The translations under genes were made by a program, and so were the position numbers. Positions 2,979 to 38,504 of a stretch of DNA of 64,000 bases are shown here, piece after piece. The notes under the pieces were generated by a model that was not told the DNA's origin, did not search any database, and saw only the letters and a list, made by a program, of their open reading frames with translations. Position 1 is the stretch's first letter. Every line of letters starts with the position of its first letter. Source of the stretch: Rebecca billardiae RCC1528 (lineage: Eukaryota > Protista > Haptophyta); the NCBI GenBank assembly GCA_965240325.2, contig OZ251231.1:2046001-2110000 (forward strand), given 5' to 3'.

Positions 2979-3277
2979 CACGGCGCGAGCAGTTCAGACT
3001 GCGCCATGGAAACATTGCGGCACGCAACGGCCCCGCTTCTCAAGCTGCTCTGAGATCACCTCTCAGATTGTAGTACTGGGGGGGACTACGTACCCGCATA
3101 GCGGCATCCACCATCTGCGCCGACGGCGATTGGCCAGAAAGTGTCTTTGCAGTTAGCCGGACGGCTTGCCCCCTCGCCCGCGCGGGCGCGGCTCGGCCGC
3201 GACGCCTCCGCGCACACAGCCCGAGCACAGCGAGGCAGCGAGCCGAACGGCCTTACGGTACCGCCTCCGAGGTCGAG

Positions 3278-7755: not shown

Positions 7756-8439
7756 GAGTGGTGGCGGCGGCGGTGTTTGGCGGCCATCGTGAAGTCCGAT
7801 GACCGGGAACCGGAAGGAATCTTAGCTTCGAGTCCTTGATGACATGATGAGTTGGGGTCGCAAGAGCTATTCAATTGAGATTACCCAGGCCTGAGTAACG
7901 GCAGTATCTTCGCTTTCCGCCAATCAGCGGATTCAGCGCAGCTTTCGACGGCACCCGAGTCGAACGTTCACGTCGTTTTCGTGAAGTTGGTCGCATCTTT
8001 TATCTACTAGGTAAATACCCGCCCCAATAAAGGAAGAATCAAAATCGACGTAGCAGGTGTACAGTGTTTGCCAGTGTGACCCGCCATTCGGGCTCACAGA
8101 GGCGTTGGCGCGTTGCGACGAACGAGGTGAGCACCGTCGCAGCCCGCGCGCCGGTGCTGGCAGCGCGCGGACAGATAGGCCGAGCTGCGGCCGACGGCGG
8201 GCCGAGACAGTCGGCCTGCCGCCGCGCCGTCCGCCTTCGTGAGTTCGTCGGCCTGCCGCAATAAACACGGTGCCGAACTCACTGAGTGAACTCAGCGCCG
8301 GTCGGGCCGCGACAGCGAGGACGTGGGCCGCCCAGACATAGAGACTGCGGGATACCCGCTGTGAGCAGGCAAGCGCCAGACGTGTGCGCGCGCGAATACA
8401 GTCACGGTGCAGTCAGCGCCCGCGTGCTCGCCCACGGCG

Positions 8440-10595: not shown

Positions 10596-10752
10596 TTTTT
10601 TGTTTTAACGTGCGTAAGGCTCACGGTGCGGCAGGTTGCCGCGCCATCCTTCATCGCCACGCTCTCCGAAGAGAGACCTGGCGGAAACTGGTTTGAACCC
10701 ATGACCTCAGACGCAAGAGCACGCCAGTACTCCCACTCGGCCATAGACCGGC
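10596..10752 (-). mobile_element. tRNA-derived SINE-like element (or tRNA pseudogene with a structured 3' extension)
   Basis: Minus strand reads GCCGGTCTA-TGGCCGAGTGG (A box)...GGTTCAAACC (B box)...CCGCCA. Then come a CTCTC-TTCG-GAGAG hairpin, a long imperfect hairpin and the A-rich tail TTAAAACAAAAAA. There is no proper acceptor stem. Confidence 0.6.
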
Positions 10753-11166
10753 GTCGTAGTCTGAATTACATCAGGCCCTTATGATAATCATCAAATCGAT
10801 CTGCCCGCGTATTCGACGGTCACGTCGACTCCGGAGTCGACGTCGCCCTGTACTACTATGCTGCTATATACCGTCCGTGTCCGCCGTGCGGCTGTGCTGC
10901 TGTCAATTGTCTCAATTGACGATGTCGACAATCGATGATGTAAGTTGTTACCGCCTTTCGTCAATATAAGCCATTAATTATTTAAAAATTAAGCCATGAT
11001 TTGATTTTTGACCGGTGACCGCGGTGACGACGGTACTCACGACGGCCCCGCGGCCGCGTCCGGATCGGCCGCGGCCGCGCTGACGTATCATTCGGTGGCG
11101 TGACTCAGTCGGGCCGGGCCGCGTGCGCGACCTGCGTGGGTGCGCTAGCGCCTCACTTGTCACTCC

Positions 11167-12573: not shown

Positions 12574-12868
12574 GGCGAACCCGCCGCGCCCCATCGGTCC
12601 TCGCGCGTGGCGGCGAAACCTGCGCGCGCGCTAAAAAGTGCGCTGAAAACTCGAGACAAGCAAACTCCAATCCAACGGTTGGCAAGGTGCGTAGCGCGCT
12701 TTCCGTGCACCGGGCCGCGCGCCCCGCGCGGCACACGCTTGCGCACGCCCGCGCGCCCGAGAAGTACAGTCCCCGCGTGGGCTCGGCCTCCATCCCGCTT
12801 GCAATCGAGGCGGACCAGGCGGCAGGCGCGTTCGCTTGGACCTGGGGTGTCAGCGGCGCCTCCGCACG

Positions 12869-17165: not shown

Positions 17166-19755
17166 TCAGCCGGGGAACTTGCTCATCACGCGCTCCGCCT
17201 CCATGCGCTCGTCCGGGTCGTTGAAGCCCGCGAATTGCCTCCCGATCAGGTCGAGCTTGGGCGTGTCCCACATCGAGTGCGCGGCCATGCGCTCAAACTG
17301 GCCGGTGGCGATCAGGCACTCCTCGTCGTCGAGGTCGCACGCCGCGCTGTGCCCGGCGGCGAGCTGGTCGAGGAACATGTTGGCGTAGAGCGAGGTCGAG
17401 TTTGTGAGCAGCTGCCAGTGCGGCCCGCGCTCGACGATCTCGCCGTGGTTGATCACCAGGATCTCGTCCGCGTCGATCACGGACGAGAGCTTGTGCGCGA
17501 CCACGACCACCGTCTTGTCTCGGTTGAAGTCGGCGAGCGCGGCGCCGACGCCCTGCTCGGTGATCGAGTCCATCGCGGAGGAGTGCTCGTCGTACAGCAC
17601 GACGGGCGCGTCGCAGAGCATGGCGCGCGCGATCGCGATGCGCTGCCGCTCGCCGCCCGACATCTGCCCGCCGCGCTCCCCCACGCGCGTCTCGTACCCG
17701 TCCGGCTTGGCGTCGATGGCGTCGTGCAGCCCCGCGCGCGCAGACGCCTCGCACAGCTGCTCGTCTGATGCGCTCAGGTTGCCTGCGCGACCACGGGCGC
17801 GCGCGCGCGCGGCGCGCCGGGGTCGGCTCGGCCTCGCCCCGCCCCGCCCGCGCGCCCGCCCGCGCCCGCCGCACCGCGCGCACGCACCGTAGCGGATGTT
17901 GAAGCCGACCGTTTCGTCAAACAGCACGGTGTCCTGCGGCACGAGAGAGACCGCGCGCCGCACGGACGCGGGGTCGACCCTGGCCAGGTCCTGCCCGTCG
18001 ATGAGCACGCGGCCGGCGAGGGGCTCGTAGAAGCGGCCGATCAGCTTGAGCACGGTCGACTTGCCCGAGCCCGACGAGCCCACGATCGCCACCTTCTGCC
18101 CGCGCCGCACCGAGAAGGAGATGTTGCGCAGCATGCCAAACTGGGCGCCGAGCGACGCCGCGGCCGAGCCGCGCAGCGCGCCTGGCCGCGGGTAGGCGAA
18201 GGTGACGTCGTCGAACTGGACGAGGCCGTCGGTCACGCGGAGAGGCGGGAGCTGCCGCGCCCCCGCCTCCGCCTCGCGCGCGCGCCCCCGCTCGTGCAGC
18301 TGCAGCACCGGCCCCATGTCCACGATCGCCTGGCGGATCTCCTGGTAGGTGAAGGACAGTGAGGTTAGAGGCGTGTACAGCTGCAGCAGGACGCCGTTGA
18401 TGGCCGTCACGTCGCCGATACTCATGCTGCCCGCGAAGACGCGCGCGGAGGCGGCGCCCATCACGAGCGAGAGGGCGGCCGCGAACAGCGCCGTCTGCGC
18501 GCGCCGCGCGGCCCGCGGGGCCGGGGGAGTGTGAGCCGCGGCGCGCGGCGCCGGGGCCGGCACGGCTGTTGCGCGGCGCGGCGCGCGGCGCGCGGCGAGG
18601 CGCGGGCGGGCGGGCGGCGCGCGGCGCGGCGCGGCGCGCGGCGCGGGCGGGCGGGCGGCGCACCTGGCCGATGTTGAGGAGCGAGATGACGCGCACCGCC
18701 TCGACGTTGGTCCGCTCGATCTTCGAGAGCACGCCGTCGTACCGCCGCACCTCGAACCTCTCGTTGGTGAACCAGCCGACCGCCTCGTGGTTGACGAGCG
18801 AGTTGAAGAGCGTCGACTGCAGCGTGTTCTCGTGCGCGTTCAGCCGCGCCTGCACGACGGCGCGGCGCTCGGAGACGCGCAGCGTCCACGCGACGAAGGC
18901 GAGGCACATCCCGCCGCTCGTGAGCCAGAACACCGGCTCGTACCGCGCGCCCATCATCCGCACGACCAGCAGCAGCTCGAGCAGCGTGGGCACGATGTTG
19001 AAGACGGTCAGCCGAATCAGCATGGTCATCGCGCGGTGCGCGCGCGTGAGCTGCTGCGCGGTCTCGCCGGTCGAGCTCGTCGCGTGCCACGCCATGCCGA
19101 GCGCGTGCACGTGCGCGAACGAGTCGCGCGCGAACGCCCGCACCGCGCGCTGCCCGATCGGCACGAAGACGAGGTAGCGCAGCTCCTGCAGCGCCGTGTA
19201 CAGCATGCGGCTCAGGCCGTACACGGCGAAGAGGGCGAGGGGCGCGGCGGCGAGGGCGTGCGAGGGGGAGGCGAGCGCGTCGATGCCGCGCTTGAGCATG
19301 AACGGCACGCGCACGAGGCACAGCTTCGCCGCGAAGAGCAGGCTGAGCGAGAAGACGAGCCGCGCCTTGGCCCAGTGCGCGCCGCTCGGCCACAAGTACC
19401 GGCACACGATGCGCATGCACGCGAGCGCGTCGCTCAGCTGCGGCGCGGGCGCGGCGAGGCCGTCGAGAGCGGCCGTGCCTGGCGCGACCTCGCCTCGCGC
19501 GGCGCCATCGCCGGCGCCATCGCCGGCGGCAGCCACGCTCGGGAGGGCGCTGCTCCACGCGATCCCAGGCCGGCCGCGCGTCGCGCGCAGCGGCGGCCAG
19601 CGCGTGCGCGCGGCCACACCACGCGGAAATGCGGACGACGCATCGCACCCACCGAGAGCCACCACGCCCACGGCGGCGAGCCACGCCCACACCCAACCGC
19701 CCCCTCGCGCGCGTCGCGAGGCGGTGCGCCGCGCGGGCCTGGGGAGCACCGCCAT
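17166..19755 (-). CDS. ATM1: ABCB-type half transporter, ATM1/ABCB7/HMT1-like, ~771 aa; exons 19755-18664, 18494-17888, 17782-17166
   Basis: TMD with FNIVPTLLELLLV and SLLNIGQ|TALF. Walker A GSSGSGKST, Q-loop VPQDTVLF, signature MSGGERQRIAIARA, Walker B VVLYDEHSS, H-loop VAHKLS. Both GT..AG introns are frame-consistent. The N-terminal leader has a hydrophobic stretch. Confidence 0.9.
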
Positions 19756-19821
19756 CGCCGAGCAATATCGCGATTGGCGAAAGGCCCTCATCAGAAACTC
19801 GCATGCACAGTGCACGCGTGC

Positions 19822-19858
19822 GGAACTTCGCGATAAAGCTGCTTTATCGCGAAGTTCC
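19822..19858. promoter_or_regulatory. Perfect 37-bp palindrome in the divergent ABC transporter/desaturase intergenic region
   Basis: GGAACTTCGCGATAAAGC-T-GCTTTATCGCGAAGTTCC (18-bp arms, 1-nt centre). A regulatory role is inferred only from position. Confidence 0.6.
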
Positions 19859-20131
19859 ATGGTCGGGCGAACGGTCGCAAATGCGCCGGCTCTTTCCATA
19901 TTCGTCACGTTTGAACTTGTAATGAGGCCGGGTATCATCAAGAGGGACGAATTCATTGCAGCTGCACGCGCGTTCTGACGTGGCGATGGCGCGAAAACCC
20001 ATGTTTGCCATCGCCGAATCGCATCGAATCGCCGTGTCAAGTGCGCATCCAAACCCGCGCGTGATCCAGCAGGTCGACGCTTCGTCGGCGCGCGTCGTGC
20101 ACGCACACGCAGCTCACACACTCGCGTAGCT

Positions 20132-21597
20132 ATGCTCCACGCAGTATGCGCCTGGTCGTCGGTGCTGCTTGCCGCGTCGCTCACAGCGCCACGCCCGCCG
20201 GTGCTCTCGACGTCCGCGCCCGCAACTGCGCTCAAGCCGCGCGTGGCGCCCAAGGGCACCAACGAGCTGCGCGTGCGCATCGACGACCAGTGGTTCGACC
20301 TGACGAAGTGGCGCGCGGCACACCCTGCGGGCGATCACTGGATTGATCTGTACAACCAGCGCGACGCGTCGGAGGTCTTCCACGCCTTCCACTCCGTCGA
20401 CGCGCGCACGCGCATGCTGCCGCGACTGCCGCGCGTCGCGGACGAGTCGGAGGTGGAGGCGCTGGACGCGGCGTGCGCGCCCGTCACGCCGCTGCAGCGC
20501 GAGTTCCGCGAGCTGCGCGACCGGCTCGAGGCGGAGGGGTGGTGGAAGCGCGAGCCGCTTGCGGAGGCCACCGCGCTCGGGCTGTGGGCACTCGCGATCG
20601 GCGCCGGTGTGACGTTTGCGTGGTCGGCGGTGCCGATCGTGAACACGCTGTTTGCGGCGCTCACGCTCGCGTCAGCCAACACGATGGCGGGCTGGCTCGC
20701 GCACGACTACGTGCACGGGAAGGACCGGTTCTGCGACGTGATGCGCCCATTCGGCGGCATCGCCGCCGGCCTCTCGACCACGTGGTGGTCGAACAAGCAC
20801 AACCTGCACCACGCGCTCACCAACGAGGTCGGCGTTGACGAGGACCTGATGGTCGACCCGGCGCTGTGGCTGTGGGCGCCGAACGAGGAGACGGACAAGC
20901 CGTGGCGCAAGTGGCAGCACCGGTACGTGCTGCTGCCCTTCTCGCTGCTCTTCCACATCTGGCGCCTCGACTCGCTCAAGGTCGCGTGGGAGCGGCGCGC
21001 GGAGGCGAGCGTGCGCGACAAGGAGTTGCTGCCGCTGGGCGCGCACTACCTGCTGCTGCTGGCCGCGTGCCACGGCTCGCTGCCGCTGCTGCTCGGCACG
21101 GTCTCGCTCTCGGGGATGATCACGGCGATCATCGTCACGGTGAGCCACCAGTCGGAGGAGCTCTTCTTCGAGCACGAGCCCGACTGGGTCGCCGCGCAGC
21201 TCAAGTCGACGCGCGACGCCGTCACGTCCAACCCCTTCTCCGAGTGGATCTGGGGTGCGTCCGTGCACGCGCGCCCGACGCGCGACGGCGCGCCCGTGTG
21301 CGCGCGCGTGCGTGCGCGCGCCGGGCTGACTGGCGCGTCGGCCGCCCCGCTGCGCCCCGCGGCGGCGGCGCAGGCGGCATGAACTACCAGGTCGAGCACC
21401 ACCTCTTCCCCACCATGCCGCGCAGCAAATACCCGCGGCTCACGCGCGTGCTGCGCAGCTGGTGCGAGGAGCGCGGCATCGAGTACCGCGTGGACAGCGA
21501 GCTCGACATCATCAAGCGTAACCTCGACATGTACAAGGGCATCGCAGAGGCGCCCATCGACCCGGACGCGCCCGCCGCCAAGCCCGCCGCCGCGTGA
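20132..21597 (+). CDS. Cytochrome b5-fused front-end fatty acid desaturase, probably plastid-targeted (Delta6-like), 448 aa; exons 20132-21254, 21374-21597
   Basis: b5 heme motif HPAG. His boxes HDYVH, HNLHH and QVEHHLFP. Intron 21255-21373 restores IW|GGMNYQ. Signal peptide plus Ser/Thr/Pro/Arg-rich transit-like leader. Confidence 0.93.
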
Positions 21598-22147: not shown

Positions 22148-25100
22148 ATGGCATGGGGGCGCGTGCTCCTCGTGCTCGGGCTCGCCGCGACGTGCGCACC
22201 CGCCCGCGGCTTCGAGGGCTCGGCCCAGCCGCTCAGCGACGCAGGTGCCACCGTCGGCAGCGAGGTCGAGGCGGTGCCGGCACTGTATGGGCCGCACGTG
22301 CCGTTCAACGCCGACTTTGACCGCAGGGCGACGGCGGTGAGCCCGGCGGACGGGTGCAGCATGCTCACCACCGACCAGTCCGCGCTGCACAACGCCACCG
22401 CCATCTTCGACCTGAGCAGCTCATGCCTCGCGCTCGACGCGGCGCTGCGCGCGCAGCAGCGAGGCGCGGCCGCGGCCCTCTTTGTCGACGAGGACGGCGC
22501 GCGGCTGCGGCGCTCGAACCTGGGCTTCCTCTCGCACCAGTCGCCGCGCGTGCACGAGCTGCACATCCCCGTCATGCTCGTCGGCCACGCCGCGCGCTCC
22601 GCCCTCCGCGCCGCGAGCCGGCTGCGGCTCAAGCTGCGCGCGTATGAGCTGGCGGACGGCGTGCCGCACCAGCACTCGCTCGAGGCGGAGCGGGACGCGT
22701 TCTTCACGTACACGCTGGCGAGCGCGACGAACATGACCGTGGTCGTCTTCGCGCAGACCGGCGACCCCGACATCTACGGCAACCGCGGCGCCGCGCTCGG
22801 CGACGTGCAGCTGCCGCCCGAGACGTACGTTGCGCAATACCGCGCGGCGCACGCGGGCGACGACCTGCTGACGATCAGCGCGGCGCCGGCGAGCGCGTAC
22901 GTGTTCGGCGTGAACGCGCACGAGACGACGTCGTTCACGATCCAGCTCGCCACGGGCAGCCACGAGCTCGAGCTCCCCAGCGGCCAGCCCACGCGCGTGA
23001 CGCTGCGCCGCGGCCAGTACCGCTACCTGAAGCACTCGGTCGGCAACGGCCGCTCGGCGCCGCGCGTCCGGTTCCTGCTCACGGAGTACACGGGCCGCGC
23101 GCGGATGTGGGTGTGCTCGCGGCTCGTGCCCAACCCGGACGCGCACGACCCGGACGGCGCGTGCCGCTGGGGCCTCGAGCTCTCCCAAGACGCGCGCATC
23201 GTCGACATCCCCGCGTCCGACCCGCACGCGGCGCGGCCGGGCGAGGCTTACCACGTGGTGCTGCTGGCGACCACCAACACCTCCGCGTCCGTGGTCGCGG
23301 TGCGGGACAGCGAGGCGGTCTCGCTGGTGGACGGCTCGCCGCAGGTGGGGCGCGTCGGGCCGAGCACGCGCACGAACACGTACACGCTGCACCGCAACGC
23401 CAGCGCCGCGCTCGAGGTGCTCGTGCAGCCGACCGTCGGCGACCTGATCGCGCGCGTCGCCGACGGCTCGCGCGAGTGGACGCTCGGTCAGAACCAGAGC
23501 TACCGGCTGTACAAGGGCGCGGAGGAGCTGCACGGCGAGCGCGTGACGGTGACGGTCTCGGCGCTGGGCCCCGACTTCGGCACCGCGCAGTACAGCCTCA
23601 CCGCCTCCTCCGGCGGCATGGCGATCACGCTCGAGGACGGCGTGCCTCACCTCGAGACGGTGGGCGCGGGCGGGTGGGAGGTGTTCCGCGTGTATGTGCA
23701 GGACCCGTTCACCGACCTCAGCGTGATCGTCACGCCGCTCTCGGGCAACCCGGACGTGTACGCGTCGCACGTGCACGAGCGGCCGAACGCGACGCACCAC
23801 GAGTTCGCCGCGACGAGCACCGGCCGCGACGTGATCACCATCGCGCACACGTCCGCGCCGATGCGCGCGTGCACCGCGGACGCGGACGCGGGCTGCGTCT
23901 TCTTTGTCGCCGTCGAGGGCGCGGCGGAGGATGGCTCGACGTCGACGTTCACCATCTCGGCGCAGATCAGCGTGGCGAACTCGGGGCTGCACGTCGACGA
24001 GCCCGCCGCCGTCGCGGGCAGCCTCGTCTTCTCCAACGCCGTCTTCGGCCCGCCGCTCCTCTTCGAGGAGCCGTCGCGCGCGCTCGCGGCCGTCGAGCCG
24101 CGCGACGGCTGCGCCGAGCTGTCGGCACGCTCGCTCGCGGACAAGGTGGCGCTGGTCGAGCGCGGCACGTGCATGTTCACCGAGAAGGTGCTGCACGCGC
24201 AGCAGAAGGGCGCGAGCGCGGTGATCATCACGAACGACGTGGACGGCCCGCCCGTGCCGATGGGCGTCGCCGACCCGGCCGACGCGTCGGCGCTGCACAT
24301 CCCGGCTGTGATGGTCTCGCGCGCGGACGGCGAGCGGCTGCGCGCGCAGCTCGCGGCGGGGCGCACGGTGCAGGTGACGCTGGAGCAGCCGGGCGACCGG
24401 CCGGTGGTGCTCGTCGACGGGATGCCGCAGCACGGCAGCCTCGCCGCGCACCAGATGAAGTACTTCAAGTTCGACGTCGGCGCGGGCCACGCGGACGTGA
24501 CCTTCACCGTCACGCCCGAGGTGGGCGACCCCGACCTCTTCGTCTCGATCGACGGCTTCCCGCCGACGCAGTCGCACTCGGACTGGGCGTCGACGTACTC
24601 GGGCGAGGACGCGCTCACCGTGTCCCACACCGACGCGATGTACTGCACCGAGTGCACCTACCTCGTCGGCGTGTACGGCTGGACGTCCACCAACTTCTCG
24701 ATCGTCGCGTCCACGTCCGCGGCGATCATCAGCCTCGAGCTCGGCATGCCGCTCACCGAGTTCGTGCCCGCGGGCGGCGCCGAGTTCTTCAAGGTGGTGC
24801 GGTACGACCCGGGCGCGGCGCTGCGCATCGTGTGCACGCCGATCACGGGCGACCCCGACCTCTGCGTCTCGACCACCACCGAGCGCCCCTCGAGCGAGGA
24901 CGACACGTGCACGTGGGTGTCGGGCGACTGGGGCGCCGACTCGATCGTGATCTCGGCCTCAGACCCGCACAGCAGCACCGGACCGTTCTACATCGCGGTC
25001 GAGGGGTACTCGAACACGACGTTCACGCTGCTCGTCTCGCAGGTGAGCCCGGCGTCGCTGCAGACGCTCGTCGCCGGCCGGCCGCAGTCCGTCGCCCTCG

Positions 25101-28100
25101 CCGAGGACGAGTGGCAGTACTTCCGCTTCGTCGCGCCCGCGAACGCGAGCGCGGTCTCCTTCTCGACCACGCCCGAGTTTGGCGACCCGGACGTGTACGC
25201 GAACGCGGGCGTGGCCGACCTGCCCGACCGCTCGTCGTACCACTTCCACTCGGCCGGGATGGGGGTCGACGTGGTGAGCGCGCGGCACGGCGACCCCCGC
25301 TTCTGCGCGAGCTGCACGTACATCGTCGGCGTCTTCGGCTTCAGCGAGACCAACTTCACGCTGCTCGCGACCGCGGACGTGGACAGCGGCGGCAGCGGCC
25401 GCGCGGGCGAGACGATGACGCTGCTCACCGACCGGCGGCCGCTCGAGGGCGTGGTGGCGGAGAGCGCGTACCGGTACTACCGCTTCCCGGTTGACTTCAC
25501 CGACCGCGCGGTGAACGTGACCGTCACGGCGTTCAGCGGCGACCCCGACATCTTCGCCTCGTTCGAGCTCACGCACCCGAGCGCGCAGCAGCACACGTTC
25601 AGCTCGACGCTGATCGGCCTCGACCACCTCGTCGTCTCGCACTTCTCGCCGCACTTCTGCACGTCGGGCAACTGCTCGCTGTACATCGCCGTGTACGGCG
25701 CGACCGAGTCGCGGTACACCATCGTCGCGGCGCAGTACAACGAGAGCCGGCTCATGCTCGTCGACGGGCAGCCGCAGCACTCGATGCTCGTCGAGGACGC
25801 GTGGCAGCACTACTCGTACACGCCCGCGCGCTACTCGTCGGTCGTGCGCTTCAGCGTCACGCCGTCGTTCGGCGACCCCGACCTGTACGTGAGCACGCGC
25901 GGGCCGCCGAGCGACGACAGCTACGAGTTCTCCTCCGCCGCGGGCGGCGGCGACGAGATCGTCGTCACCCCCGCGAGCGTGCACTGGTGCCGGCCGCCGT
26001 GCGTGTACCACGTGGGCGTGAAGGCGTGGACGGCGACCAACTACACAATCGTCGCGTCGGCGAACGCGACGCAGATCGTGCTCGAGGACGGCGTGCCGCA
26101 CGTGGGCTCGGTGCAGCGCAACGCGACGCAGTTCTTCAAGATCTACGTCGAGGACGCCGGGTCCGACCTCGACCTCATCGCCACGCCGCTCACGGGCAAC
26201 CCCGACCTGTTTGTGTCGCACGTGCACGCGCGGCCCAACGGCACGCACCACGAGTTCAAGTCGACGAGCCGCGAGCGCGACGTCGTGCACGTCGAGCACA
26301 CGGACGCGGCGATGCGCGACTGCACGGCGGGCGGCGCGCGCTGCGTGTTCTACGTCTCCGTGTACGGCGCGGGCAACGCCACCTCGTCCTTCCAGCTGAT
26401 CGGCACGCTGCACACCTCGAACCGCGGGCTGCGCGTCGACTCGCCCGCCGACGTTGCGGGCGAGTACGCCAACCGCGCCGCCACGTTCGGCGAGGCGGCG
26501 CCCTTCGAGGGGGAGTCGATGCGGCTGGTGGCGACGTCGCCCGAGGACGCGTGCTCGGAGCTCAGCGGCGCGCCCGCCGCGCTCGCGGGCAAGATCGCCC
26601 TCGTGCGCCGCGGCGAGTGCGTCTTTGTCGAGAAGGTGAGGCGCGCGCAGCGCGCGGGCGCGGCCGGCGTGATCGTGGACAACAGCGCGGGCACGGTGGG
26701 CGCGCTCTTCATGGCGACGCCCGAGGGCGAGGAGATGGCCGCGGCGGACGTGTCGATCCCGTCGGTGATGGTCTCGGCGGACGACGGCGCGCGCATGCGC
26801 GCCGCGCTCGGCCGCGGCGCGGTGCACGTCACCCTGCAGCAGCCGGGCGACCGGCCGCGCATGCTGGTCGAGGGCCTGCCGCAGCACGGCACCTCGCGCC
26901 CGTACGAAATGGTCTACTACAAGATGTACGTGGGCGACCACCACCACGACGTGAGCTTCTCGCTGACGGCGGAGGTGGGCACGCTCGACCTCTACGTGCG
27001 CGCCTCGACCTCGGCCGACGGGCTGCCGCCCACGCAGACGCACCACGACTGGGCGGCGCGCTCGCCCGCCGACTCGGTCACGGTGCGCGTGAGCGAGGCC
27101 AACTTCTGCGACCACTGCTACTACTACGTCGGCGTGTTCGGCCAGACGGCGGCGAACTACAGCATCGTCGGCGCGACGTCGGAGGCGACGCTCACGCTGC
27201 AGCTCAACATGCCCACGACCGAGCACCTCGAGACCGACGAGTACGAGTACTTCAAGGTGGTGCTGCCGGACCGGTCGCACGCGGTGCGCATCACGATCAC
27301 GCCGATCACCGGCGACCCCGACATGTACGCGAGCACGTCGGTGCGGCAGCCGAACGCGACGCACCACACGTGGTCGGCGAACGCGTTCGGCGAGGACACG
27401 CTCTACATCACCGGCTTCGAGCCCGACGACGAAGCGGTCTACGTCGGCGTCACCGCCTTCGCCAACTCGACGTTCACGATCCTCGCGAGCGCGGGCGAGG
27501 ACGAGTGCACGACGCTCGTGAGCGGCCAGCCGCAGCAGCTCTCGGTGCCGTCGGGCGACTTCCGCTGCTTCACGATCAGCGTGGGCGAGGACGCGACGCA
27601 GCTCACCGTCGGCGCGACCCCCGCCTTCGGCGACCCCGACCTCTACATCACCAACGACGGGCTGCGCCCGAGCGAGTACCACTTCCAGTGGCACAGCACG
27701 CGCACGGGCGGCGACGAGGTGCACGTGGACACGCGCTCGGGGCGGGGCTGCGTGGGCTGCCGGTACACGGTGGGCGTGCACGCGTTCACCGCGACCAACC
27801 TCACGCTGCAGGCCACCGTCTCGACCAACGCGTCGCACGTCGGCCACCGCATCCTCTCCGAGGGGCGGCCGCTCGTGACGACCATCGACGCGGGCCAGAC
27901 CGCCTTCTTCGAGTACCCGCTCGACTCGGACGCGCACGACCTCGACGTGCGCTTCTCGCGCTTCTCGGGCGTGGCCCACCTGTACGCGTCGTTCGCGACG
28001 CCGACGCCCGGCCCGGCCGGCGCGCAGTGGGACGTGCTCTCCGCGCTCTTCAACGCCAACACGGGCTTCACCGTCGCGCGCGACGACCCGCGCCGCTGGG

Positions 28101-31100
28101 CGTGCGCCGGCCAGCCGCCGTGCCCGCTCTACCTGGCGGTCGAGGCGCCGCAGCCGTTCAACGCGACGGTCTCGCTGCTGATCGCCGAGGCGAGCGAGGT
28201 GGCGGTCGTGTCGCTCGTCGACGGCCGCCCGCAGAACGACAACCTCGACAGCGGCCTCTACCGCTACTACAACGTCACCGTCTCGTCGGCGGAGGCGACG
28301 TCGCTCTCGGTGGCAGTGACGGCGCTCTCGGGCGACCCCGACCTCTTCGTGAGCAACGACGGCACGCTGCCCACGGCGGAGCACGCGATGTGGTCGCAGA
28401 CGTACTCGGGCGGCGACTCGCTGCGCATCTCCTCGACCGACGTGCACTGGTGCTACGACTGCAAGTTCACCATCGGCGTGTTTGCGTGGACGGCGAGCAA
28501 CTACACGCTGGTCGCCGCGGTCGGGACGGAGGCGCGCGCGCCCGCCGTCACGCTGCAGGACGGCACGCCGCGCACCGACTCGATCGTCGGCGCGGCGGGC
28601 GACGCGCGGTTCTACGCGTTTTACGTGGACTCGCGCGACGCGTCCGTCACGGTCACCGTCACGCCCTTCGTCGGCGACCCGGACATCCTCGCGTCGTTCA
28701 ACGACACGCGTCCGACGTGGGACTCGAGCGGGCACGTGTTCAGCTCGACCGCGGCGGGCGCGGACGTGCTGCGCATCTCGCACTTCGACCCGCACTTCTG
28801 CCCGCGCGTGCCGTGCATGCTGTACATCGGCGTGAGCGCGTACAGCGGCAACAGCACCTACTCGATCGTCGTGACGCAGAGCGACGAGACCGCGCTCACG
28901 CTCGTGGACGGCGTGCCGCAGCGCCGCTCGCTGCGCGCGGGCGAGTGGCAGTACTTCACGTACGCGGTCGGCGACGCGCCGCGCCGCGTGAGCTTCACGG
29001 TGACGCCGTCGTTCGGCGACCCGGACCTGTACGTGACGAGCGACGGCACGTTCCCCTCCGAGGAGCAGTACACGTGGATGCGCTCGAGCTCGGGCGGCGA
29101 CTCGATCAGCGTGTCCGAGGACGACCCGCACTGGTGCGCGCGCTGCTCGTACCACATCGGCGTGCGCGCGTTCAGCGCGACCAACTTCTCGCTCACCGCC
29201 TCGACGGCGAACGTGCTCACGCTGCTCGAGGACGGCGTGCCGCTGCTCGACGCGGTGGGCGACGCCGAGTGGGCCCACTTCCGCGTGTACGTCGACGAGC
29301 CCGACACCGACCTGCTCGTGCTGCTCACGCCGATGGGCGGCAACCCCGACCTGTTTGTGTCGCACGTGCACGCGCGGCCCAACGGCACGCACTGCGAGTT
29401 CAACTCGACGAGCAACGGGCGCGACCTGGTGCGCGTGTCGCACAACTCGGCGGCGATGCGCGACTGCACGCGCGACGGCGCGCCCAAGCGCTGCACCTTC
29501 TACGCCTCCGTGTACGGCGCGGGCCCGAGCTCCTTCGCCATCATCGCCGAGCTGCAGCGCGTGCGCGCCGGGCTGCGCGTCGACGAGCCCGAGCCGATCG
29601 CGGGCAACCTGCTGTTCACGCCCGCGGTCTTCGGGCCGGCGCTGCCGTTCGAGGGCGAGTCGCGCGTGGTGAAGACGGTGACGCCGCGCGACGCGTGCGC
29701 CGAGATCCGCGGCGTCTCCCTCGCCAACCAGATCGCGCTCGTCGACCGCGGCGGCTGCTTCTTCACCAACAAGACGCGCAACGCGCAGGCGGCGGGCGCG
29801 GCCGCGGTCATCGTCGTCAACAACGAGCCCGGCGAGGCGGTGCGGATGGGCGCGACCTCGACCGCCGAGGCGGCGGGGCAGCGCATCCCCGCGGTGATGA
29901 TCTCGCTCGACGACGGCGCCATCCTGCGCACGCGCATCGAGATGGGCGAGCGCGTGCGCGTCACGCTGCAGCAGCCGGGCGACCGGCCCGTCACGCTCGT
30001 GGACGGGCTGCCGCAGCGCGGCCAGGTCGAGGCACACGAGATGAAGTACTACAAGTTCGGCGTGGGCGAGGGGCACGCCGACGTGACGTTCACCGTCACG
30101 CCCGAGGTGGGCGACCCCGACCTCTTCGTCACCGCGGGCGAGACGCCGCCCACCCAGTCGCAGCACGACTGGGCGGCGTCTCGCTCCGGCGAGGACGCGG
30201 TCACGATCCGCGCGGGCGAGCCGCGCGCGTGCACGGCGTGCACGTACATTGTGGGCGTGTACGGCTGGACGCCGAGCAACTTCTCGGTGGTCGCGTCGAC
30301 CGCGGCGGCGGTGATCACGCTCGAGATGGGCCTGCCGCTCACCGAGCAGCTCTCGGCGCACGAGACCGAGACCTTCCGCGTGCTGGTTGGGCCCGGCTCG
30401 AGCGGGCTGCAGCTGGCGCTCACCGCGCTCACCGGCGACCCCGACATGTACGTCTCGACGAGCGCGCAGCGGCCGAGCGCGGAGGAGCACACGTGGTCGA
30501 GCGTGGCGAGCGGCGACGACGTGCTCACCATCCTGCCGACCGACGAGCACTTCCTCCCCGACGGCGGCGTGTACTACGTGAGCGTGAGCGCCTTCTCGAA
30601 CACGACGTTCACCATCTCGGCGAGCGTGTCGTCCGACCTCTGGCTGCTGCACGGCCGGCCGCAGCGGATGAGCCTCGCGCCGTCGCAGTGGCAGTACTAC
30701 CACTTCTACGCGGCCGCGGGGCAGAGCGAGATCACCATCGTGTGCACGCCCTCCTTCGGCGACCCCGACATGTACGTGAGCGCGGGGTACGACCACCCGA
30801 CGCGCGAGGCGCACACGTGGAAGGCGACGGCGTCGGGCGGCGACCTGCTCACGATCAGCAGCGCAGACCCGGCGTGGTGCGCGCCGCCGTGCGCGTACAC
30901 GGTGGGCGTGTACGCGTGGGCGGCGACCAACTTCACCGTCGTCGCGATCGGCGACAACGCCACCGCCGCCGCGCACGCCGGCCGCTGCGTCGGCTCTCGC
31001 GAGATGGACCTGATCGCGGGCGTGGCCGTGTACGGCGTGGCCGCGGCCAACGGCACGCGCTGCTACCGCGTGCAGGTGGACACGTTCGCGCAGCCGGTGC

Positions 31101-34100
31101 GCGTGGCGCTCACGGCGTTCAGCGGCGTGGCGCGCATCGACGCGGGCTTCGCGCCGGCGAGCGGCGCGCCCTCCGAGCGCGCGTCGGCGCTCTCGAGCTC
31201 GACGGGCTCGTCGCTCACGCTCGTGCCCGACTGCGAGCCCGGCGGCGGCGGCGGCGGCGGCGCGCAGCTCGGCGGCTGCATGCTGCACATCACGCTGACC
31301 GCGCTGAGCGACTGCTCGTTCTCGCTCTCGGCGTCGCAGGACGAGACGACGCGCGCGGTCGCGCTGGTCGGCGGCCGGCCGCAGTACGGCACGCTCAGCG
31401 CGAGCTCGTGGGCGTATTACTCGTTTGCCGCGCCCGCGCGCGGCGGCGGCGGCGGCGCGGTGCCAATCACAATCGCGCTGATGCCGCTGTTCGGCGACCC
31501 GAACATGTACGTGAGCGCGGCGGGCGGCGCGACGCCGACGGAGTCCGCGCACACGTGGGCGTCGAGCGCGGCGGGCGGCGACTACCTGCTCATCGGCGCG
31601 GACGACCCGCACGCGTGCGCGGGCGCGTGCACGTACACAATCGGCGTGCGCGCGGGCTCGGACACCAACTACTCGATCACCGCGCACGCGCACGGCGAGG
31701 TGGTGACGCTGCAGGAGGGGGTGCCGCTCACGGGGCTCGCGCCGGCGCGCGCGTGCGCGCACTTCGTGCTGCGCGCCTCGCAGCCGCACTCCGCCGTGCT
31801 CGTCTCGCTCACCGCGCTCTCCGGCCACCCGGTGATCTACGTGGCCGACCGGCCGCAGCCGTCGCCCGCCAACCACCTGCCCAACGGCACGATGGCCGTG
31901 CGCTCGTCGTCGGCCGAGCTGCGCGTGCCGCTCGACGAGTCGCGCGCGGTGGACAGCTACGTGGGCGTGTGCGCGGGCGCGGACGCGCTGCCCGCGCGCT
32001 TCGTCCTCGGCGCGCGGCTGCACGCGGACGAGCCCCCGCGGCTGCTCGACGGCCAGCCGTTTGCGTCGGCGGTGGGCACGTCCATCGCCTCGTTCCGCAT
32101 CGCAGTCGGGCCGCACGCCGAGCGGCTGCAGGTGGTGGCGACGCCGCGCTCGGGCGACCTGTCGCTGATGATCTCGAGGCGCGGCGAGGGGCACGACGCG
32201 CCCTCCGCCGGCGCCGCGGCGTACGACCGCGCCACGTGGCGCTCGCACACGCCGGGCGTCAACTCGGTGGGCGCGTGGCACACGGACAGCGGCTGGTGCA
32301 ACGACTGCGAGCTCGTGATCAGCGTGCAGGGGCACCCCGCGGCCAACTTCACGCTGCTCGCGACGCTCGAGCGCGCGTACACGCTGCGCGACGGCGAGCC
32401 GCAGCTCGCCGAGCTCACGCTCCTCGGCGAGGCGCGCCACTCCTCGCGCAGCGCCTACTTCGCCTTCTCCGTCGACCAGCCGGTCGGGTTTGCCGTGATC
32501 GTGACCGTGTACGCGGGCGAGCCTGACGTGTTCGTCTCGGCGACGGACCCGCGCCCGTCGGCGTCGTCGTTCACGTGGCAGCCGGCGAGCGCGTTCGACC
32601 AGGGCGCGGGCGGCATCCGGCAGGTCGTCGTCTCCCCCGACGACCCCGCCTTCTGCTCCGCGTGCACGTACTACGTCGCGGTGCGCGCGTACGCCTCGTG
32701 CCGCGTCGCCGTCACGGCCGTCTCCGACTCGAGCGCGACCGTGGCGCTGATGAACGGGCTGCCGGTGAAGCAGGCCGCGGCGGGCGGCGAGTACCGGTAC
32801 TACACGTTCGACCTCGCCGAGGGCGACGGCGACATGACCGTCAGCGTGCAGCCCGAGGTGGGGCAGCTCGACCTCGACATCTACGTCACCGCGGACGGCT
32901 CGCTGCCGAGCCGCGACCATTGGCAGTGGGTGTCGGCGCTGCGGCTGGACGACGAGGACCAGGTGACGGTGCGGAGCAGCGACGCGCACTACTGCGCGGG
33001 GTGCACGTATAACATCGCCGTCTTCGGCGAGGCCGCCTCCACGTACACCATCGCCGCGACCACCTCGCGCGGCACGACGCTGCTACCCATCGGCCTCACG
33101 TCGCAGCAGAGCGTCGCGCAGGGCGCGGCCGCGTTCATGGTGGCGCAGCTCGACCCGCAGGGGGAGGAGGTGTCGGTGGCGGTCGTCTCGCGCCGCGCGC
33201 CGATCCGCGTGTACCTCTCCACCGTCAACCCGCAGCCCTCCGAAGCCTTCCACAAGGCGCAGTTCGACGCGGAGCCGCTCGGCGCGGTCGGGCGCTACGT
33301 GCTGAGCGCGCGCACGCTCAAGCAGTGGTGCCCGCCCGCCGTGCTCTCCGGCGGCTTCTGCCCGCTGTACATCGGCGCGTCGAGCGACGCGGCGGAGGCG
33401 GCGGCCTTCTCGATCACGGTCGCGCAGGGCGGCGGCACCGTCCTCATCCCCGGGCTGCCGCAGGCCTCGGCCGTGGTGGACGCGCGCCCGACCTTCTTCT
33501 CGTTCGGCGTGCCGGGCGGAGAGAAGGTCGATGCGAGCGTGAGCGTCTCGCTCGGTGTGGACGGCGGGCGCGACGGCGGCGCCGGGCTCGTGCGCGTGCT
33601 CGTGCGGAAGGAGCGGTTCGCCGAGGAGCGCGCGGACGCGCACTGGTCGGCGCACGCGCAGATCCAGCACCACGCCGTCGTCAGCGTCGACATTGCAGCG
33701 GTGCGCGCGCGCGCGCCGCGGCCGCGAGCCGCTGCGCGCACTGCGCCGCGCCGTGCCGAGCCGCCGCGCCTGAGCGTCGCGCCGCCCCCGCCCGGCGCCG
33801 ATGCGCGCGCAGGACGACCCGAAGGCGTGCGCCGACTGCACGTACTACGTGACGGTGCTCACGAGCAGCGGGCAGCCCGTGCCGTTCGACGTGACCGTCT
33901 CGAACGCGCGCGGGCACACGCTGCTCACGAGAGGCGCGCTCGTGCGCTCGACGGTGGAGAGGGACGAGTCGGCGCTGTTCAAGACGTACACGTACGCGGG
34001 GTGGGACAAGGACCTCGTCATCACGGTGCGCGCCGAGCGCGGGCGCCGCCCGCGGCGCGGTGGCCGCGCGGAGGGCGGGCCACCGCCCGCGCGGCGGCCG

Positions 34101-35597
34101 CGGCCGCCCGGCTGCGCGGCGCGCTCTCACGGACCCGCGCGCGCCCGACCCTCCGCGCGCGCGCGGCACAGGTGACGCCGTGCAGCGGGGACCCGGACCT
34201 GTACGCCTCAGACATGGTGCCTAGGCCCTCGAAGGACAACTACAAGTTCGCGCACGCGGAGGTGCGCGCGCGCGCGCGCTGCCCCGCGCGCGCGCAGCCG
34301 TCCGCCCCGCGCCGCGGCGGCGCGCAGCCCGCCAGCCGCTCAGCCGCGCGCTGCGCCGCTCCTGTGCACCGCGCGCGCCCGGCTGGCTCCGCCGCGCGCA
34401 GGTGAACCACGTCGAGAGCCTGCACCTCTCCGCGCGCGACGACCGGCTGGGCGACGTGCTCTACCTCAGCGTCTTCGGCGCGCTCAGCTCCTCGTTCACG
34501 ATCGGCGCGGACGACCACGCGGCGGGCGGCTCCGCGCTGGGGCACGGCGAGGAAGGAGCGCTGCTCGCGCTGAGCGAGCCCTCCGCCTCGGCGGTCGCGG
34601 TGTCGTGGGCGGCCGCCGTGCCGCCGGAGGGGGTCGAGCCGGCGTCGATCTCGTACGAGCTGCTGCTCGCCGAGCACGCGGCGGACAAGCGCGTGCCCGT
34701 CCTCTTCACGCAGTGCGGCATCGACGAGTCTGCGCGGCTGATCGGCAACCTCACCGGGCGCGACGCGGACCGCGAGGGTCGGCTCAGCTCCAAGGTGAAG
34801 AAGCTGCAGCCGGGGACCAAGTACCAGGTGCGCGCGCGAGGGCGCGGCGGGCGCGCCGCCGCCCCGGAGCGCGCGCCGCGCCCCGCCCGCCCGGCTGGCC
34901 GTGCACGCGCCGCGGCCGGCTGCTGCGTGTGGTGTGCTCAGCGCGCACGCCCTGCGTCGGCGCGCGCACGCGCGCGGCGCGTGCGCAGGTGAACGTGCGC
35001 GCGACGCTGCCCTCGGGCGGGCGCCCCCTGCTCTACCGGCCGATGGTGTTCACGACACTCGAGCGGCCGGCCATCGGCGCGGGCGGGGTCGCCGCGATCG
35101 TGCTCGCGAGCCTGCTCGTGTGCGTGCTCGGCACCCTCGGCTGCCTCGTCGTGCGCCGGCGCAAGCAGCTCGCCTCGCTCTCGCTACTCGGCGACGATGA
35201 GGCGGCCCGGCAGGCGGACGCGGCCGAGACCTTCTCTGCGCTGGTCGCGTCGCCGCTGCAGGCGGGCGGCGCGGGCATGGAGGACGCGTCTCTGCTGCCG
35301 CTCTTTGCGCAGGGGCGCGGCGCGCCGGAGCACGTCGCGAGCCCGCTCGCCATCGCGGAGGAGGAGGTCGGCGCATCTGACGCTGCGCCCCTCGTCGTCT
35401 CCGACGTCGTCGCGGCCGATCCGCTCGCAGCGGTCGCGCCCTCAGGGGCGGCGCAGGCCGCGGCGCTGCCGCTGAGCGAGGTAGCGATGGGTTCCGACGA
35501 CGACGACGACGACGATGCCGGCGACGCAGACGGTGGCGCCCTGGCCGGCGATCGCGACCAGCTCGTGCAGAGCGCAGCAACCGACTCTGCTGCATAG
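22148..35597 (+). CDS. Giant (~4,296 aa) type I membrane protein: signal peptide, ~30 PPC-like beta-sandwich repeats, 4 PA domains, FN3-like domain, TM, acidic tail; exons 22148-33700, 33813-34025, 34172-34261, 34402-34827, 34989-35597
   Basis: Repeated (G)DPD(L/M/I)(Y/F)V cores with CxxC-xY-xxGV. PA motifs KVALVERGTCMFTEKVLHAQQKGASAVII, KIALVRRGECVFVEKVRRAQRAGAAGVIV and QIALVDRGGCFFTNKTRNAQAAGAAAVIV, plus a degenerate N-terminal copy. FN3-like VAVSW...LQPGTKYQ|VNVRA. TM VAAIVLASLLVCVLGTLGCLVV-RRRK. Four frame-consistent phase-0 GT..AG introns. Confidence 0.88.
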
Positions 35598-36288: not shown

Positions 36289-38504
36289 CTAGAGCAACAC
36301 ACCGCCATTCAAATGCTTGCCGTTGAGCTTTGACTTTGAGCCTGCGACGCCGCTTTGCAGCCGGCGCTGCGCGTTGCGCCATGCGATATAGCCAACGATC
36401 ACAGTCACCACGATGGGCGAGAGCCCGATGAGCCAGCCCAGGATGGTTGTCCACAGCGGGGCCTCGCTCGAGGCATCGCGCCTGAAGGCGCTCACGACCG
36501 ACATGGTGCCGAGCACCGCGCAGAGCGGCATTGTGACGTACGTCCACGCGGCAGTGAGCCAGCGCGGCAGCTGCGTGCCCGTCTCGTCGCGCACGAGCGA
36601 CACGAAGCCGCTGATGCCGTGGATGTGGATGATGGCGAAGAGCTGGCAGAAGCAGGTGACGTACACGCTGATGAGGCAGGAGTACCCATCGAAGATGGCG
36701 ACCATCTCGACGCCTCCGCGCGTCGTGCAGCTCAAACCGATGACCAGGCCGACCGCGCACACGACGGCGATGCCCTGGCCGAGCCGCTTGCCCTGGAAGA
36801 TGCGCCAGCCGCGCTCGACAAACGCCGAGATGCCCACCTCCAGCTGCCCCATCTGGCTGTCGATCGCCAGCGAGATGACCATCAGGAAGAAGAGGACCGC
36901 AAAGACGTGCGCGCCCGGGAGCAGCGCGAGCGCGGTCGGGTACGCGATGAAGGCGAGGCCCGGGCCGCTGAGCGCGAGCTCGCTGACCGGGACGCCCGAC
37001 ACGTGCGCCAGGTGGCCGAGCACCGAGAAGACGACGAAGCCGGCGAAGACCGAGGTCGCCGAGTTGATCAGCCCGATGCACAGCCCGTCGCGGAGGAACT
37101 TGGTGTCCTTGGGCACGTACGACGCGTACCCGATGTGCGTGCCAAAGCCCGGGCCGAGCGAGAAGAAGATCTGGGTCGTGGCGCTCGCCCACACCTGCGC
37201 GCGCGCGCACGGGCCCGCGTGAGGGCGCCGCCGCACCGCAGGCTCAGCGCGGCGCATCAGCCCAACAGGCTGACCGGAGTGTTGGGCGTCGCAGCCCAGC
37301 AGGCCACGCGCGTGCGCAGCGCAGCCAGCGGCTCCGCTCCGCTCCGCTCCGCTCCGCTCCGCGCACCTGCATGTTGCCCAGCTTGGAGAAGTCAGGCGTC
37401 ACGTAGTACATGATGCCCTCGCTGGCGCCCTCGAGCGTCACGCCGCGGAAGAAGAGGATGACGAGCACGACGTACGGGAACGTGGCGGTGAAGAGCACCA
37501 CCTTGCCGGACGACTCGATGCCGTTGTGCAGCGCCCCCCATGCCATCACCCACGCCGTCACCAGCGCGACGGTGAGCGGCCAGTTCGGCGCCAGCCACCC
37601 CGACTCGGAGAGGGCGACGTGCTGCGTCACGCACGACTCCCAGTAGTCCGACGCGGGCAGGAAGGACTCCGAAGACGTCGGCATGCACGCGGCCGAGTTG
37701 GCGCGCGTCCACGGCAGCGGCGAGCGGAAGCTGGCCACGAGGTAGTACAGCGTCCACGCGATGATCACATTGTAGTACACGGCAACGTTGAACGCGGTCA
37801 ACGCCGCGCCCCAGCCGACGCCGGTCAGCCGCTTGTCGAACTTGCCCCACACCCGACTCGCCGACACCTGGAACACCTGCCCCACGCACAGCTCGAGCAC
37901 GAAGAGCGGGATGCCCACCAGCACGAGCGCGAGCAGGTACGGCACCAGGAATGCGCCGCCACCGTTCCGCATGGCGAGCATCGGGAAGCGCCACACGTTG
38001 CCCTGCCGCGGACGACCGGGGCAGCGGGGGCGAGGTTGGTGCGAATGGTATCAGCTGGCACGGGCGGCGCGCGGGGCTCGGCGTGGCGCGCGTGCGCGCG
38101 AGCTCGCGCACCAGGCCGACGGCAAAGCCGACCACGCTGAGCAGGTATTCGATCTGACTACCCCACTGCGGCCGCTGCTCGCCGCTCTCCTCCTCGTCGA
38201 CGTCGAGCGCGAGGAACGCCGTGCTCGAGTGCGCGTGGAGGACGTGCTCGTGCCGGCGCTCCTGCGTGACGTGCGGCATATACTCGATCGTGTGACGCCG
38301 CGGGCGTGGGGGCGGGGGCTGCTTGGTGGCCTCCAGCTGGACGTCCGGGACGAGCGAGGGCAGCTGGGGGGCGGACATGCATGTGGGCACTCCCGAAGTG
38401 GCTGCGGCATCTCCGCCGGCCTGACGCGCCGCGAAGACGAGCCGGGACCACTCGTCCTGGGTCACGTCCGCCTTCGCCAGGGCCGCCGCGAATGCGGACG
38501 ACAT
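36289..38504 (-). CDS. Sodium:neurotransmitter symporter family (SLC6/NSS) transporter, ~644 aa; exons 38504-38112, 38002-37367, 37194-36289
   Basis: RPQWGSQIEYLLSVVGFAVGL|GNVWRFP...NGGGAFLVPY, TATFPYVVL, Q|VWASATTQIFFSLGPGFG, SGPGLAFIAYP, LAIDSQ. Both GT..AG introns are frame-consistent. Confidence 0.95.

Follow-up and report, generated by a model that had tools for sequence, protein, structure and literature searches.

A giant gene of Rebecca billardiae encodes a predicted membrane protein of 30 PPC-fold repeats and four PA domains, a haptophyte form of a widespread protist family

Results

The window analysed here is a 64,000-nucleotide (nt) stretch of contig OZ251231.1 from the haptophyte Rebecca billardiae RCC1528, with a GC content of about 70% on average. 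A gene of five exons lies on its forward strand at positions 22148-35597, and encodes 4,296 amino acids (aa), in agreement with the giant protein of about 4,300 aa described by a first-pass annotation made from the sequence alone. This gene is the PA-bearing, 30-repeat haptophyte form of a widespread, unstudied family. The parts of the product follow in the order signal peptide, lumenal or extracellular chain of about 4,090 aa, FN3-like domain, transmembrane (TM) helix and 147-aa cytosolic tail, and four PA domains are set among the 30 PPC-fold beta-sandwich domains of the chain. The locus is a real eukaryotic gene of the expressed type, for a predicted single-pass type I membrane glycoprotein, on a gene model based on a GC content of 98% at third codon positions (GC3), four uniform phase-0 introns and a 4,308-aa orthologue.

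Exon 1 (22148-33700, + strand) comprises 3,851 codons and holds the signal peptide, PA1-4, repeats 1-28 and the start of repeat 29. It is stop-free, and its GC content at codon positions 1, 2 and 3 is 0.66, 0.53 and 0.98, which together with the domain matches fixes the coding frame. Exons 2 (33813-34025, 71 aa), 3 (34172-34261, 30 aa), 4 (34402-34827, 142 aa) and 5 (34989-35597, 202 aa) follow on the same strand, with a GC3 of 0.97-0.99 in exons 1, 2 and 4 and of 0.89 in exon 5. Left unspliced, the open reading frame (ORF) would run for 4,085 codons (22148-34405, +), the final ~230 being intron read-through. Three-frame translation, combined with a profile of the repeats, revealed that past position ~33700 this frame reads as Arg/Ala-rich sequence, and that the protein goes on in other frames.

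The introns, all on the + strand, are located within repeat 29 (intron 1, 33701-33812, 112 nt, GTGCGCGC...GCGCGCAG, 88% GC), within repeat 30 (intron 2, 34026-34171, and intron 3, 34262-34401) and within the FN3-like domain (intron 4, 34828-34988). All four are in phase 0, measure 112-161 nt, start with GTGCGCGC, end with GCAG or ACAG and have a GC content of 88-90%, a uniform signature that could be used as a splice-site model for the genome. Repeats 29 and 30, cut by introns 1-3, are complete only once spliced. The halves of repeat 29 (33461-33938, +) match profile positions 1-~68 and 69-110 in different frames, and the orthologue is collinear across its splice junction; repeat 30 (33939-34539, +) is assembled from three profile fragments in three frames, carried by exons 2, 3 and 4, with its GDPDLY core in exon 3. 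The four 3' introns and the TM exon proposed in the first-pass annotation are retained in this spliced model, in which the split repeats are restored and the orthologue is collinear.

Very long ORFs do arise by chance at this locus, which would favour the reading that the gene is itself such a product of GC-rich DNA, or else a pseudogene in decay. Two of them overlap it in other frames, at 24959-32989 (-, 2,676 aa) and 25801-32526 (+, 2,241 aa), both without domain support; they are attributable to the third-position GC of 98%, and ORF length is thus no evidence of a gene in this genome. The 98% GC3 is confined to the coding frame, which contains 30 significant repeats and PA matches; removal of the introns restores the split domains, and a 48%-identical orthologue sits on an mRNA-like contig. 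On this evidence a chance ORF or pseudogene is already refuted in practice. Bacterial origin or contamination was likewise ruled out: the gene has introns and the GC3 pattern described above, its neighbours are eukaryotic genes, and homologues have eukaryotic surroundings.

The signal peptide (22148-22213, +; ~22 aa), read from the translation as a Met, a basic residue and a hydrophobic run, has its equivalent at the N-terminus of the orthologue. A profile iterated on the protein itself detected 28 repeats of ~110 aa in exon 1, with E values of 1e-11 to 1e-43, which the two intron-split copies bring to 30, as against the roughly 30 PPC-like repeats first noticed. All lie on the + strand: repeats 1-4 at 22658-23995 (E 2e-11 to 4e-31), repeats 5-10 at 24419-26422, repeats 11-18 at 26873-29590 and repeats 19-28 at 30005-33460, each set located with this profile and included in alignment A1. 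Mean pairwise identity is 29%. The consensus, G-x-P...F...V...TP..GDPD.YVS...P...W.S..G.D...D..C...C.Y.VGV.A...F, is centred on the core GDPD-x-Y-V-S, and a Cys pair is present in 20-21 of the 28 exon-1 repeats. Exon 1 contains 40 N-x-S/T sequons, three times the expectation from shuffled sequences (12.9 ± 3.3), and in 17 of its 28 repeats a sequon falls at one common aligned position. The sequon excess and the Cys pairs fit a lumenal or extracellular chain.

Pfam and NCBIfam scans were run exon by exon. On exon 1, Pfam returned PA (200.5 bits), UPF0669/C6orf120 (119.7 bits), PPC (62.8 bits) and DUF7590 (28.3 bits). The PPC score lies well above the Pfam cut-off of 25.9 bits and places the repeats in the PPC family by sequence. 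The UPF0669 score (PF17065) is a sum, and its best stretch covers positions 61-101 of a 185-position profile. Against the PDB, the repeat profile retrieved only 2luw (E 0.005) and a single repeat sequence nothing, so that a search by fold was needed. With the 28 repeats supplied as an alignment, repeat 20 (30329-30661) was predicted to form an eight-strand beta sandwich at a predicted local distance difference test (pLDDT) score of 93. A Foldseek comparison of this model with the PDB retrieved GOLD domains, C-terminal beta-sandwich domains of subtilases, the PPC domain 5sv5 and the collagen-binding domains of ColG/ColH, and a shape search of the Atlas retrieved haptophyte C6orf120/PPC clusters and bacterial PPC clusters (TM-score 0.79-0.87). 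The model thus has the PPC/collagen-binding beta-sandwich fold. Feature searches of the Atlas gave sub-threshold matches only, at 0.75 to a haptophyte cluster and at 0.82 to NDNF and FN3 clusters.

The first-pass annotation placed four PA domains near 22.3, 24.0, 26.4 and 29.6 kb. All four positions are correct, and PA2-4 are strong matches; PA1 falls below the Pfam cut-off for PA (PF02225, 23.9 bits). PA1 (22265-22657, +; aa 40-170; 18.3 bits) is divergent and without the RGxCxF loop, and aligns to PA2-4 at 28-37% identity and to PA1 of the orthologue at 52%. PA2 (23996-24418, +; aa 617-757) carries the loop as RGTCMF and scores 74.7 bits, PA3 (26423-26872, +; aa 1426-1575) as RGECVF with 72.2 bits, and PA4 (29591-30004, +; aa 2482-2619) as RGGCFF with 69.8 bits; the loop is also present in the orthologue. 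In the PDB, PA2 finds its best match in an M28 aminopeptidase, within the PA domain of that enzyme (E 4.9e-9), and PA3 in the PA domain of the plant vacuolar sorting receptor (VSR) VSR1 (E 4.4e-7), whose cargo-binding loop RGDCYF lies opposite RGECVF in the alignment. In plant VSR1, the Arg of this loop binds the C-terminal carboxylate of the cargo (PMC8740768). Two of the checks named in the first-pass annotation, Pfam and repeat structure, agree with its assignments (PPC at 62.8 bits, PA2-4 at 70-75 bits, repeat 20 at pLDDT 93).

No catalytic domain was found in the Pfam and NCBIfam scans of exon 1 and the small exons, where PA, PPC, UPF0669 and DUF7590 were the only matches. A hidden peptidase was considered and rejected, as the matches of the NCBIfam M36-metallopeptidase models are restricted to the PA insert of those models. 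Neighbouring domains of the chain lie no more than ~15 aa apart, which leaves no room for a hidden catalytic domain. The earlier statement that the protein lacks a peptidase is upheld, and the repeats do not occupy the position C-terminal to a peptidase catalytic domain that marks PPC appendages, there being no such domain.

Identity among the repeats is unevenly distributed. The repeats preceding PA domains (4, 10 and 18) are 50-57% identical to one another, those following them (5, 11 and 19) 50-65%, and repeats 6, 12 and 20 39-44%, which indicates that a multi-domain PPC-PA-PPC cassette was triplicated. Recent tandem duplication of the repeats at large was ruled out by their mean identity of 29%, since only the triplicated cassette reaches 50-65%.

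The orthologue, P0256, has 4,308 aa and lies on a 13,093-nt contig whose layout, with a coding sequence at 70-12996, resembles a full-length mRNA. Over aa 19-3837 of exon 1 the two proteins are 48% identical. P0256 has 30 repeats and four PA domains at matching places, and is collinear with the window gene through all four splice junctions. All 32 domains measured in exon 1 pair one-to-one with domains of P0256 at 37-64% identity with few gaps; the arrangement of domains, with its triplicated cassette, therefore predates the divergence of the two species. A word search also retrieved P0001 (2,284 aa, 51% identical), which aligns collinearly to exons 2-5 and to the final 1,844 residues of exon 1; its adjacent residues 1917/1918 flank the exon 2/3 junction, and 2089/2090 the exon 4/5 junction. 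The 90%-identity cluster of P0001 also contains P0256 and, from Pavlovales sp. CCMP2436, an NCBI fragment of 262 aa. The contig of P0256 belongs to that species or a close relative; with its nearest orthologue there, the source of the window gene is probably a pavlovophyte too. The fragment (KAJ1629875.1), recorded as a 'hypothetical protein', is a piece of the 4,308-aa protein, and its being the only piece in the record of that species indicates that gene callers and annotations fragment such genes.

The PPC-PA-PPC cassette aligns end to end, at 29-40% identity, with P0068 and P0231 (3,572 aa), both clustered with a Prymnesium parvum entry, with P0212 and P0254 of Calcidiscus leptoporus and with marine contigs. 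These matches suggest a haptophyte branch bearing PA domains.

The membrane-proximal FN3-like domain (34540-35060, +) is split by intron 4. Exon 4 alone gives no Pfam match, and the orthologue fragment matches Pfam fn3 with E=0.034. As the domain spans the exon 4/5 junction, it was modelled on the contiguous sequence of the orthologue; the AlphaFold model (pLDDT 83) is an FN3-type sandwich and matches FN3 structures. In an alignment of 31 family members (A3), Cys-66 of this domain is invariant, as part of a Cys-Gly pair, and the exon 4-5 motifs LFTQCGI and YQVNV correspond to the family consensus xYTxCGL and YxFNV. The TM helix (35085-35153, +), identified from hydropathy and the positive-inside rule, spans 23 aa followed by RRRK, and is conserved in P0256.

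The cytosolic tail (35154-35597 with the stop codon, +; 147 aa) looks low in complexity, with 27 Asp and Glu, 7 Lys and Arg and no Tyr. It contains a juxtamembrane LSLLGDDEA (35178-35204, +), the sole canonical [DE]xxxL[LI] motif, EDASLL (35280-35297, +), and a Ser-acidic cluster, Ser-Asp7 (35493-35516, +). The signal peptide, FN3-like domain, single TM helix and acidic tail with EDASLL named in the first-pass annotation are thus all found. The tail features common to the window protein and P0256 are the juxtamembrane RRRKQLASLSLL[GS]DDEA, VASPL and the Ser-acidic cluster; unrelated residues stand in the place of EDASLL in P0256. The pattern Phi-x-[AS]-P-L (VASPL, LTAPL, MSSPL, MTAPL, MDAPL) occurs in all six haptophyte-branch tails examined, those of the window protein, P0256, P0231, P0089, P0123 and P0248, with a per-tail shuffle P of 0.001-0.075; as the pattern was defined after the tails were inspected, it serves as a lead only. 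A tail like that of the mannose-6-phosphate receptors (MPRs) was also sought in the window protein and rejected, with no Pfam match and with a resemblance between LVASPL and the MPR stretch LVADG too weak to use.

An exhaustive profile search with the repeat recovered 4,784 representative clusters (E<=0.001), of which 631 reach E<=1e-30. More than 100 relatives are giant type I membrane proteins, and the best 150 are mostly giants of 10-24 repeats with a C-terminal TM helix. Named relatives come from several supergroups, chrysophytes among them, and include chlorarachniophytes, Paulinella, Cafeteria, Spumella, Epipyxis, Chlorochromonas danica, Chrysoparadoxa, Stentor, Naegleria, Acrasis, Ancyromonas and haptophytes; the genomic context of two homologues is eukaryotic. 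The window protein has the defining features of the family, namely tandem repeats of the A1 type, an FN3-like domain with Cys-Gly and one C-terminal TM helix. The gene is not unique, given 4,784 matching clusters, giants in several supergroups and a one-to-one orthologue in another pavlovophyte. The relatives are on record as 'hypothetical', 'uncharacterized' or 'predicted protein', or under an automatic domain label ('PA domain-containing protein'). Literature searches on C6orf120/UPF0669, on PPC with haptophytes and on the Pfam accessions found no paper describing the family of PPC-repeat giants, in line with the earlier suggestion that the protein may be an undescribed receptor.

Family tails are enriched in YxxPhi motifs, present in 117 of 145 tails (54.3 ± 5.8 in shuffles), and in runs of at least four acidic residues (33 of 145, against 5.0 in shuffles), and a receptor or trafficking role would fit a family with such tails. 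The [DE]xxxL[LI] motif is not enriched (15 of 145, against 17.1 in shuffles); EDASLL, in which the first-pass annotation saw a fit to this adaptor-binding signal, is moreover absent from the 48%-identical orthologue and was rejected as a conserved feature.

Eight relatives, P0063, P0067, P0085 (Naegleria gruberi), P0087, P0106 (Acrasis kona), P0136, P0219 and P0221, match Pfam Man-6-P_recep at 30-48 bits (cut-off 25.4) over their TM helix and tail, with ATG27 also above its cut-off; the matches are confined to the TM and tail part of these profiles. The eight have in common the sequence IPNxEFWxDLPxLxxDG and a C-terminal end of the GYGAI type, and look like PPC arrays fused to an MPR-type sorting tail. 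The di-aromatic motif of the tail of the cation-dependent receptor, CD-MPR, is Phe-Trp. A di-aromatic motif in that tail is a known TIP47-binding signal for endosome-to-Golgi return (PMC2685784). P0154 (2,066 aa, marine metagenome) opens with a VSR-type head of PA and VSR_TRX (62 bits), ahead of PPC-like repeats and a TM helix; judged by these matches, it connects the repeat family to modules of plant-type vacuolar sorting receptors.

About 20 relatives of ~2,500 aa (P0024-P0062 and others) form a tight, orthologue-like group with 20-22 repeats, whose tail reads KNRKLTxELxIEMHDVPKxAxRKAxRGP ... KYSxLLxEDEE ... YxPP; we know of no motif that its first part matches. One homologue, at L002 9482-20802, was split by the gene caller, and P0003 (2,617 aa) resumes in another frame (17368-20802), where more repeats, a TM helix and a tail are found; the join could be an intron or a frameshift. 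Short relatives of the size of the Entamoeba receptors discussed below turned out to be fragments.

The neighbours of the gene in the window are unrelated to it. Upstream, at 20132-21382 (+), lies a cytochrome b5-fused fatty-acid desaturase of the front-end type (Pfam Cyt-b5, FA_desaturase). Downstream, at 36289-37257 (-), lies the C-terminal half of a member of the sodium:neurotransmitter symporter family (SNF, 226 bits), probably a single exon of a larger gene.

Discussion

The closest studied analogue of the protein is the CPBF family of Entamoeba, and to our knowledge no other eukaryotic receptor that has been studied is connected with PPC-like domains; the comparison is one of published descriptions. 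CPBF1-11 of Entamoeba histolytica are receptors that carry lysosomal and phagosomal hydrolases and have YxxPhi tails (PMC3465781, PMC3285589). CPBF1 has a weak PPC match (PF04151 at 2.3e-3) and no known carbohydrate-binding domain, and the proteins are of ~110 kDa, with tails of 11-38 aa ending in YxxPhi and, according to the authors, no homologues outside Entamoeba (PMC3465781). The window protein resembles them in its signal peptide, large lumenal part, single C-terminal TM helix, cytosolic tail and PPC similarity. It differs in its PA domains, which CPBF lacks, and in its tail, 147 aa long and without Tyr as against 11-38 aa with a YxxPhi end.

With the plant VSR and RMR proteins it has in common a type I topology, lumenal PA domains and the RGxCxF loop of PA2-4. 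Unlike a VSR, it has no VSR_TRX (PF25011) or EGF match and no Tyr motif in the tail, and unlike RMR it has no RING-H2 match in exon 5; its four PA domains are embedded in 30 PPC repeats, and it is about seven times longer. The PPC and PA families and folds are also those of the appendages of bacterial secreted peptidases (M36 fungalysin-type, M4, S8, M28; ColG/ColH). These appendages accompany a catalytic domain and number 1-3 copies, whereas the window protein has no catalytic domain, is eukaryotic with introns, has 30 copies and is membrane-anchored. Human C6orf120 (UPF0669, PF17065), which gives the best Pfam score on the repeats, is itself an N-glycosylated protein of the secretory pathway, but is soluble and single-domain, with a length of 191 aa, and only the central ~40 positions of its profile match each repeat.

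LRP1, megalin and SorLA of animals are giant multi-ligand endocytic or sorting receptors (>2,000-4,500 aa) that string together small binding modules by the dozen and have a single TM helix and a tail bearing sorting motifs. Their likeness to the window protein is functional only, as their domains (LDLR-A, EGF, beta-propeller, VPS10) are unrelated and there is no homology. The MPRs (CD-MPR, and CI-MPR with its 15 MRH repeats) and Atg27 follow a common design with it, a lumenal chain of repeated beta-rich domains, one TM helix and a tail with both acidic and Leu signals, yet the window protein has no MRH domain and no PF02157 or PF09451 match, MPR-type matches being found only in the eight relatives. 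The mannose-6-phosphate system is reported to be widespread in eukaryotes (preprint, 10.64898/2026.10.22.760878), so that the PPC-repeat family would be at most one more receptor class and not the replacement for a missing system. The TBSR proteins of Trichomonas, beta-sandwich repeat proteins of the surface and phagolysosome, are an unconfirmed lead only (PMC8717582).

At a probability of roughly 0.5, we favour the reading in which the window protein binds ligands multivalently and without catalysis, as a receptor cycling through post-Golgi and endocytic compartments. The RGxCxF loops of PA2-4 and the PPC array would bind protein or polymer ligands, and the tail would recruit sorting adaptors through the juxtamembrane LSLL[GS]DDEA, the VASPL motifs and the Ser-poly-Asp cluster. 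The argument for trafficking is drawn from relatives of the same repeat, FN3-like and TM design, and not from EDASLL. The endocytic or sorting receptor of the first-pass annotation survives in this form, through the family tails, the VSR-type head of one relative and the PA loops.

Several observations weigh against a cycling receptor. The tail of the window protein has no Tyr, and hence no YxxPhi, and is not of the FW type seen in MPRs; its one canonical [DE]xxxL[LI] is not conserved, and the conserved LSLL lies only ~9 residues from the membrane with no acidic residue at -4. The tails of the other haptophyte-branch members are divergent and have in common only a weak motif defined post hoc. 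Tyr and acidic tail signals are found on ordinary endocytosed surface proteins too. The RGxCxF loop is common in the PA domains of secreted peptidases; it is therefore permissive, and no proof of VSR-like cargo binding. A rod of 34 domains kept one-to-one would suit a structural surface protein equally.

Such a surface protein is the alternative that we regard as a real, if minority, possibility. In it, the glycosylated rod, probably >100 nm long if extended, would act at the plasma membrane as an adhesin, capture fibre or coat protein. It would attach from outside to prey, particles, polymers or the cell covering, and would take no part in a cycle of cargo sorting. The beads-on-a-string ectodomain, with domain number and order exactly kept between two species, is what such a role would lead one to expect. 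Bacterial domains of the PPC and collagen-binding type bind insoluble polymers, and the repeat fold matches the ColG/ColH domains; FN3 domains with TM anchors are typical of adhesion molecules, and many of the named taxa with relatives are phagotrophs or mixotrophs. The MPR-type tails, C-terminal GYxxPhi ends and VSR-type head found among the relatives point instead to internal trafficking. The presence of the family in many scale-less protists also tells against a coat protein, and its wide spread over such protists argues against a role specific to scales.

The same GYxxPhi ends (GYGAI, GYGSI), a pattern known from LAMP1 and other lysosomal membrane proteins, could be taken with the type I topology and the sequon excess to indicate a LAMP-like resident glycoprotein of the lysosomal or phagosomal membrane, whose lumenal array protects or organises the membrane and carries no cargo. 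We consider this improbable, in view of a sequon density of only ~1 per 100 aa, a long (147 aa) tail without Tyr, and intact PA binding loops, which suggest ligand binding. Still less probable, and very much so, is a precursor cleaved into soluble PPC and PA modules, secreted in the manner of C6orf120, or a scaffold holding separate peptidases. UPF0669/C6orf120 is indeed the best Pfam match of the repeats, and the PA domains are similar to ones found in secreted peptidases of the M36, S8 and M28 families; no conserved inter-domain cleavage sites were noticed, though no systematic search for them was made, and the conservation of TM helix, FN3-like domain and tail across the family argues for an intact membrane protein.

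Beyond the receptor reading for the single protein, we entertain, tentatively and as a rather unlikely extension, that the window gene represents the haptophyte branch of an ancient family of giant PPC-array cargo receptors, possibly as old as the last eukaryotic common ancestor, and a further class of sorting receptors for lysosomes, phagosomes and vacuoles. Such a class would stand beside MPR, sortilin/Vps10, VSR and LIMP-2, with Entamoeba CPBF possibly a reduced offshoot. Individual lineages would then have added modules of their own: Naegleria and Acrasis a tail of the MPR type, one marine protist a PA-TRX head of the VSR type, and the haptophytes their PPC-PA-PPC cassettes.

The design of the family follows a logic known from sorting and endocytic receptors built of repeats. 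Only in a few lineages of free-living protists and algae is it understood how hydrolases and other cargo are directed to lysosomes, phagosomes and vacuoles. A widespread, unstudied family that pairs a repeated binding fold with recognisable sorting tails provides concrete genes for the study of this process in haptophytes and in tractable relatives. Should the window protein be only a surface coat protein or adhesin, it would still be the largest conserved surface protein described for a pavlovophyte.

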